A stretch of DNA of 56,771 bases from assembly GCF_003704095.1 (NCBI RefSeq), contig NW_020847569.1:992001-1048771 (forward strand). Reading direction: 5' to 3'. This document shows positions 8,496 to 32,606 of the stretch, in pieces; the first letter of the stretch is position 1; each line of letters opens with the position of its first letter. Source of the DNA: Pocillopora damicornis. Its lineage: Eukaryota. The translations under genes were made by a program, and so were the position numbers. The notes under the pieces were generated by a model. It saw only the letters and a list, made by a program, of their open reading frames with translations, did not search any database and was not told the DNA's origin.

Positions 8496-11375
8496 ATGGA
8501 TTTAGATCTTGGAAACGGAAACCCACAATCTGGCGAATGGAATGCCGAATTTCACAAGCTGAATATTACCCCAAATGATGTAAACAAAACAGTAACTGCG
8601 TCTCAATTCATCGCTGGATTTTATGCGCTGCTCTTCTACCTCGTCCTTCTCATCCTGAGTGTACTTGGCGTTTGTTTCAGAGCATGTGTCAAGATGTTTT
8701 CATCTCGAGCCACCTCTCTCCTCTTTTTAATAGGGACGATGTTAGCCTGTGTAAACGTGCTCTGCAATTCGGACAACTTAGAGGTGAGAGTATACTTTCG
8801 CCTGCCTACGGCTCTTCTCGTTGGAATCGTCTTTGCTTTGGTTGGAGCGGTATTCTTCTTCTCCAAACCTGAAGAAACGGCCAATCAAACTACCTTAGCA
8901 AGACAGCAACCCTCAATGGGACTTGTTGTCGGAGTAATATCCATCCCTTTGATCATCGTCGAGATATTTCTCCTTGCTGCAGCTAGTGTTTCGAGGAACA
9001 AAAGCAATCCAGAGTCTTGGGCTCTTGTTCTCGCAGACAAGACAACGTTTCTTGTCCAGAAGGTTGTCCAAGCAATTGTATATATTTTACTGTTAAGATA
9101 TAGGACAATCTGTCCGAGGTACAAAGAAAATGCCAAGTTTTATTTGAAGACCTTGGCGTTTTTCAATTTCATCGAATGGGTAGACTCCCAAGTAAACGAA
9201 GACACCGATATCAAGTTAAGTCACGCTAACCTGTCTTACAGTGCTTGGTTCGATATCCTTACAGTATTTTACAAGGCCTTGATAATAGATTACCGCCTTC
9301 TATGCTCACTTCTGTTCCTTGAGCATTCATTAGAGGACGAAATGGCGGACAATTACGACGAAGTAAACGACACACCTAATAGAAACATGACCTTGAAAAA
9401 AGAGCAATACAGAGCTGCAGGGTATATTTTTGGTTTGTTGAGTCTTTCTGCACCAATCTGCACAGCACTGTATCATGTTGAGAACCTTCATATCCCTCCA
9501 TGGGTCCATGTGTTTGCCATTATAGTAAATTTTACCATTATTGGTTGTGGAGCAGCCTTTTTATGTAGAAATGATTTAACTAGTGATAGGGAAAGGCATC
9601 AGGAATCATCTGGAGTCCAAAGCATGGTAGGTTCCCATTTATTTTGGCTGTGCAGCTTAACGTCACTTAATCACTGTGCTAACTTAGGCTTTAGAGTATG
9701 AACTGTGAGTCTAGTTGTTTAGTATGTTTCCTATCTTAAATGGTGTAAAGAGAGGCCGGATCATCACAGTGCTATCGAGAAATCTATCGAACAAAGTGAC
9801 GCTGTATACGCTATAATCTGCTATAAATTGAAGTGAGGATTATTGCGTGACTGTCTTTTCCCAAAGGGTAAAAAGGAAAAGAACGAAACAACTCAAAGAT
9901 TCTGTTCTCGAATTCTTCTTCTCCTATCTGTTGCAGGTATGTTTTTTGGGAGCTGTGGGACTCACCTGTTGGATAATCAAAGCACCAATCTCTGGTTATT
10001 GGGCAGCTATCGGAAATGGCAGAATTGAAAGCGACGTCTCCCGATACTTTGCCTGGGCCGCAGCGAAGTATTTTGCTCGCGGCATTTCCACAGCGTTTCT
10101 GATGGGTCTTTTTTTGAAAGTTAAGGTGCAATCCTTGGCACGTAAAAATTCGGAAATGATTGCAAATCATTTCTTAGTGCCTGCTATGATATTAACGATA
10201 TTTGGAGCTTTTGCAGAGAGTTTAATCGATCAGTATGTAGGACCGGTTGACAGTAGACTGAGGTTTGTAACTTCGTATTTATTTCCCCATGCATGAGTAG
10301 GTAGATACATATTGTTGCAAAATCATTATGAAAAGTAGTACCATTTTGAACATCCGTTGTCATTGTTTACGTTACTTCACTCTGTTAAGCAATTTTCAAG
10401 TCGATAACATATAAAGCCTTTGTCTTTTTAGTGATACTTTCTTCCATTCTTCTTCTCCTCTCCATCCTCTTAATTTCTCGGTGTATCTCCATCACTTCCC
10501 TCCTGATTCCACGCCCGATAGCTGTATTTCCATCAGTTACTCACGCTTTTCTTCACTTGCACTCAGAATTCCAATCCGGAATGTCTATTTATAAATCACT
10601 ATCACTTATATCATTTCGTTGACCACTTACCGTGACCATCCTTATAGACATCATCAATACCAACACACAGTATCTCCTCCATTGCTGTCAGCATAGCAGT
10701 ACTTATCAGCAACACAAGTAACATTGTTACCATCAGCACTTGCAGCACCATTGACACCAATACCACTATCAACTTTTCAAGCATCTTTACCGTCAGCATC
10801 ACCATTGCCATTATTGCCACCCATCACCACCGTGACTTTAACAAACACCATCACCGTTGCCTTCAACTTAATGAATGTCATTATGTCATTATCATTCCCA
10901 AACTGTTGCCACCACCAATACATTATACCCCTACTTATACAGTTGCAATTGCCTCCAACACCACAGTCATGGTTATCACTTTGGAATTCAGCATTGCCAA
11001 AACCTTAACCATTCCAAATATCACTGGCATCAGTATTGAGTCCTTCGCAGCCTCTCTATCATCTTTATTGCCACTATCACTTTCTTCGCCTCTTCGTCGT
11101 AATTATAACATTCATACATATTCAATTTGTACATAATATAACATAGAGCGGGTTACTGCTCATGTAATCGTTAGTCTCCCAGGTTTCTAAAGGATGAAGT
11201 GCGTAAAAGCTTTAATGAGGTGTAAACAAAATTCGTTTTTATTTATAGAAAGGAAATCGATGATGCAAGTCTGGATCTCCTGTTTGCAGCTGGTCCACCG
11301 ATGTACCTTGGATTTCTGATTCATATGGTTTTGCATTTTGTTATTATACAAGCAGAGATTGTCAAACGTAGTTGA
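8496..11375 (+). CDS. Multi-pass (~13 TM) otopetrin-like membrane protein, paralog A, 527 aa; exons 8496-9626, 9937-10262, 11249-11375
   Basis: GT-AG introns after GVQSM (phase 0) and LR (phase 2), with a continuous frame. Motifs QKVVQ, FFNFIEW, LIIDYRLLC and PPMYLGFLIH. Gene model is high confidence; family assignment is moderate. Confidence 0.85.
10430..11100. repeat. Degenerate (CAC/CAT)-rich low-complexity tract in intron 2 of paralog A
   Basis: Runs of accatc/accatt/catcac, producing spurious T/I/P-rich ORFs. Confidence 0.7.
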
Positions 11376-12175
11376 GCTCGCACACATTTTGGTTACATGG
11401 GTGCATTGTTCATGAATTCATAATTAAAAAGCTGACAAACACTTTAACTACTCTATATATGAATATGTAAGTATGCGTAAGTAAATCATTGTATACTCCG
11501 TTTAACAACATTACGAAATAGAGGTAAAAAAATAACATAGCTGCTTTGCAAATGGTTCCTCCAAATCCGTTTTCCACGATTTATGCAATGGCGGTAATGA
11601 TTTAGATCTGGCGTATCACGGCTAAGTAGAGTACCAAATATGGCAAATACATGCAGTGCTGGAATAACTTTAGAGAACATAGCAGAATTTGGCTTTGATT
11701 ACAAAACGTTTTGGTATTTCAATGAGCCCATTTTCACGAATAATGGCTGTAAATATATGTAAATCGACACGACTGTTTGACTTCGATGCTTCAATAGTCC
11801 GACCATTGTTGAGAATGTCTGCCGCCAAATTAAGCTTGGGCGTCGATTAAAATCTTTTGATCAGCTCTTCAAATTTAGCAATTTGAGGGGCTAACCTTAC
11901 TGACGCCATAGATTTTTTCCGGAAGTATTTTCGACGAACTCACATACAACTTGTCATCCACTGCGCAGCAGCCGAAACTAATTTTTCCGGGCGTCACATT
12001 TTCCACCTATTACTGGCGAGAAAGCCCAAACATGCATTTGGGCTTAAAGACGACTGGGAAAATGATGACCCCGAGGCTAACGCTCGAAGACAACTTTCCA
12101 AATGCTTTGACAGTTTATATAACATTAAAAATATCTAAGTAATAATTAGAGTGCGGGCGAAGGATAACACTGAAG

Positions 12176-31600: not shown

Positions 31601-32606
31601 CAGGGGCTACGAGGCAGAAGCTGTCAAGAGCAAATCCGAATGCTCTTTTGACTTCATCACAAGGCGACATTTCTTGATTACCACCGCCATTGTCATTCTC
31701 ATCGGCCGGGTCCGCGTGAATATGAACTTCAACAGAATGTTCAAGAAACAGTAGTGCACACAATAAGCGATAATCTATGATCAATGCTGTGTATAGAACT
31801 GTCAATAAATTGAACCAGCCGTCAAATTCTGCACTGATTCCAGTTAAAGCTACGTCGTCGTCTATATTTTCTTGCGCGTCTATCCACTCGATGAAGTTGA
31901 AAAAAGATAATAATCTAAAATAAAACCGAACGTTCTCTTCGTATCCTTGGGAAATTGTAGTGTTCCGCAGATACAGATAGGTAACAACTTGGAAAATCTT
32001 CTGAATAAGGAAAACAGTCTTGTCCGCGTTAACTAAGCGCCAGTCTTTATCCGCCAAGCTTCTTTTCGTCTCGTCCGTTATATTGGAGCTAAACGATGCG
32101 CAAATCAGCACAATCTCGATAATGACCAAAGGAAAGGTTAACAAGGAAACTACCAGACCCATGGAAGGCTGTTGTTTACCGAGGGGCGGTCTATCATTCC
32201 CCTGTGGGTTGGCTTCTCCTCGAGCTCTGTTTGGCATTTCAAAGAAACGCCAGGCACCAAAGATTATGAAAATTATTCCAATAAGTATTGTTGTGAAAAG
32301 CCGGAAGCTCAACTTCACCAAGAGGTCGTGTGCATTTGTAAATACATTTATACAGGTAATTAGTGCCCCCACGAAAAATGCGAAGAGTGCTCCTTGCGAA
32401 GAAGAAACTCTAAGACAGGGCTGGAACCAGACACCGAGAATGCCCAAGAAGAACATAACCAAATAGAATGCCGCAGCACAACTTGCGGTGATGAGTTGAG
32501 ATGCGAATTCTGTCGAGTTAAGGTCGTTATTGGTCGCAGTATCACAAATATTCTTCAAAGTAACGTCTGTGAATTCTTGACCACTGCTTACAAAGTGGAA
32601 ACCCAT
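28645..32606 (-). CDS. Otopetrin-like ~13-TM protein, paralog D, 596 aa, with RG-rich tail; exons 32606-31431, 30408-30080, 28930-28645
   Basis: Same intron positions and phases. Motifs QKIFQ, FFNFIEW, LIIDYRLLC and PPMHLGFLLH. Tail WGRGRGWGRGRG...GRGHGRGRGRSW. Confidence 0.85.
29810..30050. repeat. Interspersed repeat; its end recurs at ~49880-49960
   Basis: gtgaatagca...agtttgagt...caatcagagcgcgccttcaatgctatc...gttttag is shared between the two loci. Confidence 0.6.
30900..31390 (-). mobile_element. Penelope-like retroelement 3' remnant (GIY-YIG C-terminus plus hammerhead-like motif) in paralog D intron 1
   Basis: HGNNNLLRESQFTVLRKCQSKFDCLVFEMLFIKKLKPNLNIQTDSIRAKLFV* matches the E-x3-I-x3-KP-x-LN GIY-YIG tail of PLEs. 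Confidence 0.75.
30978..31027 (-). ncRNA. Minimal type I hammerhead ribozyme-like motif (U3-A8 variant)
   Basis: UUGAUAA-U-GACGUU cagcu AACGUC-GAAA-C guc G-UC: core, 6-bp stem II, short stem III and GUC cleavage triplet. Stem I is weak. Confidence 0.55.

Follow-up and report, generated by a model that had tools for sequence, protein, structure and literature searches.

A four-gene cluster in the coral Pocillopora damicornis encodes members of an undescribed cnidarian membrane-protein family with a predicted otopetrin fold

The window analysed here, a stretch of 56,771 nucleotides (nt) on contig NW_020847569.1 of Pocillopora damicornis, contains at 8496-32606 four neighbouring intact paralogs, genes A and B on the forward strand and genes C and D on the reverse strand. 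They encode members of a cnidarian-wide, unnamed family of proteins of about 530 to 600 residues. An original prediction, made from this DNA alone, had taken them for divergent relatives of the otopetrins, a family of proton channels, and the present work follows up that proposal. The first exons lie in open reading frames (ORFs) at 8472-9701 (+), 13780-15177 (+), 24018-25214 (-) and 31407-32636 (-), whose translations can be aligned over their full length, 41-42% identical and sharing 101 columns that never vary; exons 2 and 3 of each gene were found by tblastn with full-length homologs, consistent in order and strand. With all 12 of the resulting exons open and bounded by canonical splice sites, the prediction of four intact paralogs was borne out. 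The gene models are listed below, a slash marking the boundary between exon and intron and TM standing for transmembrane helix.

8496..9626, forward strand: gene A exon 1, 377 amino acids (aa); N-terminal tail with N-x-T sequons, TM0-TM8 and the next loop; donor ATG/GTAGGT at 9626/9627; 62.8% identity to the Oculina protein P0081
9937..10262, forward strand: gene A exon 2, TM9-TM11; ends in phase 2; acceptor ..TTGCAG/GTA, donor ..CTGAG/GT; 69% to P0081 by tblastn
11249..11375, forward strand: gene A exon 3, TM12 with P-x7-H, including the stop; acceptor ..TATAG/A; found by tblastn; the complete model has 527 aa
13831..15147, forward strand: gene B exon 1, 439 aa from the first ATG, the start being tentative; 99% to the database ORF P0037, which begins at 13831
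15947..16260, forward strand: gene B exon 2, from splice sites and tblastn
16707..16863, forward strand: gene B exon 3, including the stop, from acceptor, frame and tblastn; the complete model has 595 aa
24072..25214, reverse strand: gene C exon 1, 381 aa; 74% to the spliced ortholog P0005
22408..22733, reverse strand: gene C exon 2, from splice sites; 76% to P0005 residues 383-485
21690..21846, reverse strand: gene C exon 3, including the stop; 64% to P0005 residues 484-533 with the same ..IPLD end; the complete model has 541 aa
31431..32606, reverse strand: gene D exon 1, 392 aa; RNA joint 31429/31431 in four studies; matches residues 1-393 of the transcript-derived protein P0308 at 98.5%
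30080..30408, reverse strand: gene D exon 2, both joints seen in RNA; P0308 residues 393-502 at 100%
28645..28930, reverse strand: gene D exon 3, with an Arg/Gly-rich C-terminal tail and including the stop; RNA joint; P0308 residues 500-596 at 96.9%; the complete model has 596 aa, the length of P0308
23098..23197, no strand: assembly gap (N run), noncoding, within intron 1 of gene C (24071-22734)

Each gene has three coding exons, and the two intron positions and their phases are common to all four, as the original prediction had held. Intron 1 is in phase 0, with the donor ATG/GTA after '..GV(K/Q)(I/S)M' and the acceptor before 'VC.LGAVG'; intron 2 is in phase 2 and falls inside the Arg codon of '..LR' (AG/GT), its acceptor preceding exon 3. 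These positions were read from the junctions, and RNA evidence for splicing is confined to gene D: its introns 28931-30079 and 30409-31430, GT..AG on the minus strand, are skipped exactly in RNA contigs from four independent studies, and the three exons agree with the 596-aa P0308 at 98.5, 100 and 96.9% identity. The window exons were searched one by one, and two natural full-length proteins, P0005 (the ortholog of gene C) and P0308 (gene D), served as proxies for the spliced products. The motifs QQPSMG/HQPSMG, Q-K-x2-Q, FFNFI(E/Q)W, ALIIDYRL and P-x-(Y/H)-LGFL(I/L)H, singled out by the original prediction, are all present in four of the four genes. We also considered that the assembly gap might break gene C. 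The N run is separated from the donor of intron 1 by 874 nt and from its acceptor by 364 nt, the exons on either side keep canonical splice sites and the spliced ortholog P0005 joins both at the same residue; as the gap is intronic and no coding frame crosses it, this possibility was rejected.

The copies have some peculiarities of their own. The C-terminus of gene D (28645-28800, minus strand) consists of repeated RG and RGRG units; genes A, B and C have no such tail, and it is present in P0308. Arg/Gly-rich tails are usually RNA-binding or methylated and are unusual on a multi-pass membrane protein. Exon 1 of gene B has at 14700-14870 (+) about 54 inserted residues, a stretch enriched in Gln, Asp, Ser and Asn that is made of two similar half-units and falls in the loop, predicted to be cytoplasmic, that connects TM6 with TM7. 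Between genes A and B, the open stretch 12703-12879 (+) is nearly identical (about 90% by eye) to the N-terminal tail of gene A, including the sequons and TM0, and has stop codons at both sides; it matches P0081 residues 15-75 in tblastn and is what remains of a partial duplication that copied the 5' part of gene A exon 1. Within intron 2 of gene D, 52 nt (29991-30042) lie under high-depth RNA contigs that run into unrelated sequence both ways, and this is probably a dispersed repeat that is transcribed elsewhere too.

A region-restricted homolog search for full-length members gave 6 proteins, and an exhaustive profile search of 1.84 billion representatives gave 240 family members, of which 147 were non-redundant and used for alignment. 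The named members come from Scleractinia (Acropora, Montipora, Oculina and Desmophyllum), Actiniaria (Nematostella and Exaiptasia), Octocorallia (Paramuricea) and Hydrozoa (Hydractinia and Clytia), and all of them are annotated as uncharacterized or hypothetical; no family member from beyond Cnidaria was found among the named sequences. The literature searched on otopetrins in corals and cnidarians, and on identifiers of six family members, yielded no description of the family, and the finding is real and previously undescribed. A family specific to corals or to calcification was considered and rejected, given the members in Nematostella, Exaiptasia, Paramuricea, Hydractinia and Clytia.

The P. 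damicornis genome has one canonical otopetrin and, by the family profile, six or more loci of the new family. Besides A-D, these comprise a copy on C2329 that has three exons and is interrupted by a gap, and a full-length, intronless copy on C1114 (1414-3171, plus strand; 585 aa) in which Phe replaces the Trp of TM5. In the maximum-likelihood tree, gene A clusters with proteins of Oculina and Montipora (support 99), and the clade of genes B, C and D (support 95) otherwise holds nothing but unnamed database sequences; the C1114 copy belongs elsewhere, in a deep clade of anthozoan proteins, and the hydrozoan members make up a further one. From this topology, the cluster combines an old duplication, separating A from the rest, with a younger lineage-specific expansion. 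Several homologs in other assemblies lie on contigs of identical length, which suggests that similar clusters may exist there.

The link to otopetrins comes foremost from the predicted structure. We modelled P0005, the 74%-identical ortholog of gene C, with AlphaFold2, using a family-only alignment of 147 sequences that held no otopetrins, and no templates. An earlier model from an 8-sequence alignment, with a predicted local distance difference test score (pLDDT) of 49.7, was discarded. The model from the larger alignment has a pLDDT of 87.8, a predicted template modelling score (pTM) of 0.83 and 13 long transmembrane helices, in agreement with the approximately 13 hydrophobic segments originally counted. 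A Foldseek search against the PDB placed all otopetrin entries at the top, with probability 0.99-1.00 and target-normalised TM scores of up to 0.67; other folds reached TM scores of about 0.15. Independently of Foldseek, VIA-align compared the model with 48,161 PDB representative chains and ranked the same family first:

zebrafish Otop1: Z 23.4 over 402 of 421 residues, root-mean-square deviation 4.0 A
chicken Otop3: Z 23.1 over 392 residues
CeOtop8: Z 23.0 over 409 residues
XtOTOP3: Z 22.0 over 370 residues
next best chain, an unrelated fold: Z 9.7 over 164 residues

The match, with a deviation of about 4 A for these otopetrins, spans model residues of about 62-527, that is, helices 2-13, and helix 1 (residues 28-62) is an addition. 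Otopetrin structures were released from April 2019 onward, a date that presumably falls after the training cut-off of the AlphaFold2 weights used, and a memorised otopetrin fold is therefore unlikely. Language-model features, taken from two distant family members, lead the same way: those of the Acropora protein P0119 retrieve clusters bearing PF03189, the Pfam otopetrin family, in 28 of 30 matches, and those of the Hydractinia protein P0146 do so in 30 of 30 named matches. On the evidence of fold and residues together, we regard it as highly probable that the family adopts the otopetrin fold, and only a little less so that it is truly homologous to the otopetrins. At the level of the fold, the structural searches thus uphold the original view of a divergent otopetrin-like protein whose helices 2-7 and 8-13 form two six-helix repeats after an extra helix, and the comparison of an AlphaFold model with otopetrin structures by Foldseek, which that prediction had proposed as a check, put otopetrins on top. 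Given otopetrin-type cytoplasmic termini plus one extra helix, the N-terminus is predicted to lie outside the cell; N-x-S/T sequons stand directly before the first helix in four of the four genes and Lys/Arg-rich loops, read for P0005 against the helix list of the model, fall on the predicted cytoplasmic side, both of which are consistent with this orientation.

The conserved residues of the family were compared with those of otopetrins. Conservation was counted over the 147 family sequences, and residue numbers are those of P0005:

TM3: E158 (96%)
TM4: Q196 (96%), K197 (97%), Q200 (99%) and Y204, the group ranging over 96-99%
TM5: N231 (96%) and W235 (97%), forming N-x3-W
TM6: D272 (97%), Y273 (94%) and R274 (94%), with Y266, E283 and H284, the group ranging over 89-97%
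TM10: K420 and R424 (about 80%)
TM11: D474 (78%)
TM12: P502, F507 and H510 (75-86%; H510 86%)

All of the conserved polar residues are kept in genes A-D. The corresponding positions of the canonical otopetrin of this genome are Q214 in TM4, N243-x3-W247 in TM5, E300-Y301 in TM6 and P597-x4-F602-x2-H605 in TM12, so that residues of like kind occupy the same helices; the spacing within TM5 and TM12 is identical between the two. In otopetrins, a triad of Gln, Asn (or Asp) and Tyr constricts each barrel, the TM6 Glu preceding the Tyr is essential (Asp is tolerated, Gln is dead) and so is the TM12 His (PMC6483595); the TM6 Glu and TM12 His are absolutely conserved and have been proposed to form a bridge for proton transfer between the barrels, and a Glu-to-Asp change at TM6 keeps XtOTOP3 active (PMC11343839). 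By helix order and motif, the family would have the first-barrel triad of TM4 Gln, TM5 Asn and TM6 Tyr in Q196/Q200, N231 and Y273, conserved at 94-99% and present in four of the four window genes. The acidic TM6 residue would be D272, which immediately precedes the Tyr of the triad, and the His of TM12 would be H510, eight residues past the TM12 Pro, as in P597...H605. At the triad position of TM12 there is Phe, again as in the canonical otopetrin of the genome, and the Arg of the FYR box is Leu. The triad mapping of the original prediction thus survives in part: the first repeat (TM4 Gln, TM5 N-x3-W, TM6 D-Y) and the P-x7-H spacing of the last helix stand, but the Gln and Asn of the second repeat do not, and N-x3-W occurs only once.

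Otopetrins have three candidate proton pathways, and which of them conducts is still debated. Our preferred reading is that the family is a strongly diverged offshoot of the otopetrin superfamily and conducts protons by an otopetrin-type Asp/His relay, which we consider reasonably likely; taken as a mechanism in its own right, the relay appears the most likely candidate, with a slight balance in its favour. Each subunit would consist of two six-helix barrels preceded by one extra N-terminal transmembrane helix, which would put the glycosylatable N-terminus outside the cell. Protons would move down their gradient through a relay at the interface between the barrels, where the buried TM6 Asp, adjoining the triad Tyr, would hand the proton to the TM12 His. 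The Gln/Asn-x3-Trp/Tyr network of the first barrel would be intact in such a protein, with the Gln and Asn of the second barrel replaced. What the data show directly is the genes, the splicing of gene D, the conserved residues, the distribution in Cnidaria and the predicted fold; dimer formation, proton selectivity and any physiological role, like the residue-by-residue match to otopetrins, are inferred.

A bolder version would have a second, hitherto overlooked and cnidarian-specific otopetrin branch, whose proton channels would work with no more than the first barrel and the Asp/His relay between the barrels and would dispense with the second-barrel triad that vertebrate OTOP3 needs, and in which the tandem copies B, C and D of reef corals are specialised for distinct pH compartments, for example in calcifying or alga-hosting cells. 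We see this as speculative and, taken as a whole, rather doubtful. The role in calcification or the symbiosome put forward in the original prediction gained no support, since non-calcifying and non-symbiotic cnidarians carry the family, members being found in the non-calcifying Nematostella, Exaiptasia, Hydractinia and Clytia; the coral-specific copies B, C and D may still have such a role.

Several observations weigh against reading the family as proton-conducting otopetrins. Among the 147 sequences, there is neither a conserved Gln in TM10, where K420 and R424 are found, nor a conserved mid-helix Asn in TM11, and the second-barrel triad is thus missing; mutants of the C-pore residues Gln585 and Asn623 in XtOTOP3 have virtually no current (PMC6483595). 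The predicted TM9 lacks a conserved acidic residue corresponding to the Asp that partners the His, and position 380, where this helix begins on the cytoplasmic side, holds K or D. The equivalence of family and otopetrin residues is itself deduced from helix order and motif spacing, and the modelled protein is the ortholog P0005, a stand-in for the proteins of the window. Finally, a profile match to otopetrins, which the original prediction had named as a further check, was found neither in Pfam nor in the PDB nor by hhalign. PF03189 did not match the window exons or eight full-length homologs even at E<=10, nor was it among the first 25 families listed in Pfam scans of 26 and of 147 family members, and otopetrin chains remained unmatched at E<=10 when PDB sequences were searched with phmmer and the family profiles A2, A3 and A5. 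Run in local and global mode, hhalign compared the family profiles with the canonical otopetrin and with a 15-sequence cnidarian otopetrin alignment, the latter of low diversity (effective number of sequences 2.8), and returned probabilities of 0.4-1.2% with inconsistent registers; the best local matches, being in differing registers, were given no weight, and the forced global alignment is meaningless. As a positive control, the canonical otopetrin of the genome reaches 3.4e-53 with PF03189 and about 1e-19 with the solved chains of OTOP2 and OTOP1, and the whole-genome PF03189 search finds that one locus only, on another contig.

The main rival is a protein with an otopetrin fold by descent and a changed function, be it a channel or transporter for another ion, a non-conducting sensor of pH or of a ligand, or a regulatory subunit. 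The loss of the second-barrel Gln and Asn and of the TM9 Asp, together with fixed charges at E158, K197, R274, K420 and R424, would fit such a change, as would the extreme divergence of the sequence and the nearly currentless C-pore mutants of XtOTOP3 (PMC6483595); human OTOP3 is reported to show mixed proton-anion permeation (PMC13579931), so that selectivity within the fold is not fixed. On the other hand, the TM6 acid (97%) and the TM12 His (86%), the residues now regarded as proton carriers, are kept, Asp is tolerated in place of Glu (PMC11343839) and the first-barrel triad is near-invariant. We hold a changed function to be rather unlikely, though it deserves to be taken seriously.

A second alternative denies homology altogether and holds the family to be an unrelated one of 13 transmembrane helices, whose packing has converged on, or was mistaken in prediction for, a double barrel. 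The failure of every method tried to find significant sequence or profile similarity agrees with this, and hhalign detected no internal repeat between the N-terminal and C-terminal halves of the family; helical membrane bundles can, moreover, reach middling structural scores by chance. The scores obtained are of another order, however: Z is 22-23.4 over about 400 residues, collinear and covering 95% of the Otop1 chain, and the next fold lies 12-14 Z units lower. The confident model was made without templates or otopetrin sequences. Each motif is on the helix that bears its otopetrin counterpart (TM4 Gln, TM5 N-x3-W, TM6 acid-Tyr, TM12 P-x4-F-x2-H), and the two independent language-model look-ups lead to PF03189. 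An unrelated family is therefore very improbable in our judgement. Least probable of all is that the cluster consists, in part or entirely, of non-functional duplicates in decay: the truncated 5' copy of gene A at 12703-12879 does show that partial duplications happen here, and gene D is the source of all the RNA evidence, but the twelve exons are open with canonical splice sites, the family-invariant residues are kept in all four genes, and the orthologs of gene A (in Oculina and Montipora) and of gene C (spliced, 74% identical) show that the copies have been maintained over long periods.

Overall, we favour a divergent otopetrin branch that plausibly conducts protons. The family can be seen as a natural experiment on the otopetrin proton path, one in which the acid/His pair was kept along with the fold and the triad of the first barrel, and the second-barrel Gln and Asn and the TM9 Asp were discarded. 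If its members conduct protons, this would support the inter-barrel relay model and show the triad of the C-terminal barrel to be dispensable. For cnidarian biology, the family adds several unannotated candidate proton pathways per genome, which may matter for the control of pH in calcification, symbiosis, digestion or sensing, none of these being singled out by the present evidence. It is also an example of a family missed by profile methods and recovered by structure prediction, and the intronless C1114 copy offers a handy single-exon construct for expression.

The window contains other genes as well. Between genes B and C, at 18296-19072 and 19608-20948 (+), lies an unrelated gene whose exons match two domains, VIT at 7.8e-28 and von Willebrand factor A at 2e-19, which is an architecture like that of inter-alpha-trypsin-inhibitor heavy chains. 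Two tandem single-exon peptide deformylase genes are found at 312-992 and 2547-3227 (+), with Pfam matches of 2.5e-44 and 4.1e-41. At 39931-46978 (+) there are exons resembling site-1 protease (MBTPS1), one of which matches the fourth domain of MBTPS1 (2.3e-42); another is subtilisin-like in sequence and has no Pfam match by itself.

Among known systems, the closest are the otopetrins themselves (OTOP1-3 of vertebrates, OtopL of arthropods and CeOTOP8; PF03189, the Otopetrin Domain Protein family). The family resembles them in the predicted fold of two six-helix barrels with the same helix order, in the TM4 Gln, the TM5 Asn-x3-Trp, the TM6 acid-Tyr and the TM12 Pro-x7-His, and in a TM6-TM7 loop that is long, variable and cytoplasmic. 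It differs in having no detectable sequence or profile similarity to them, in its extra N-terminal transmembrane helix with conserved N-glycosylation sequons, and in an Asp rather than Glu in TM6; the Asp of TM9 is not conserved, the second barrel keeps neither its Gln nor its Asn, and the FYR box is without its Arg. The conserved charges E158, K197, R274, K420 and R424 are specific to the family, which among named sequences is limited to Cnidaria. Nearer at hand is the canonical otopetrin of the same genome, an intronless 623-aa ORF at G000:C2762 (1441-3312, minus strand), whose relatives in Hydra, Hydractinia and Rhopilema are named 'proton channel OtopLc'. It shares with the family the fold class, the P-x4-F-x2-H spacing and a Phe instead of Tyr at the triad position. 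It is unusually well conserved: between coral and Nematostella it is 75-80% identical, and it is about 60% identical to hydrozoan and scyphozoan 'OtopLc', whereas the family evolves much faster, with paralogs at about 41%, and is multi-copy. A third known system is Otop2l of the sea urchin, a proton channel of the calcifying primary mesenchyme cells (PMC13000164), which the original prediction took as its precedent for an otopetrin that takes part in removing protons during calcification. Proton currents have been measured for Otop2l, which belongs to the canonical otopetrins, and the cnidarian family is known from genes and models; the sea urchin protein is a channel of calcifying cells, while the family described here is carried by non-calcifying cnidarians as well.

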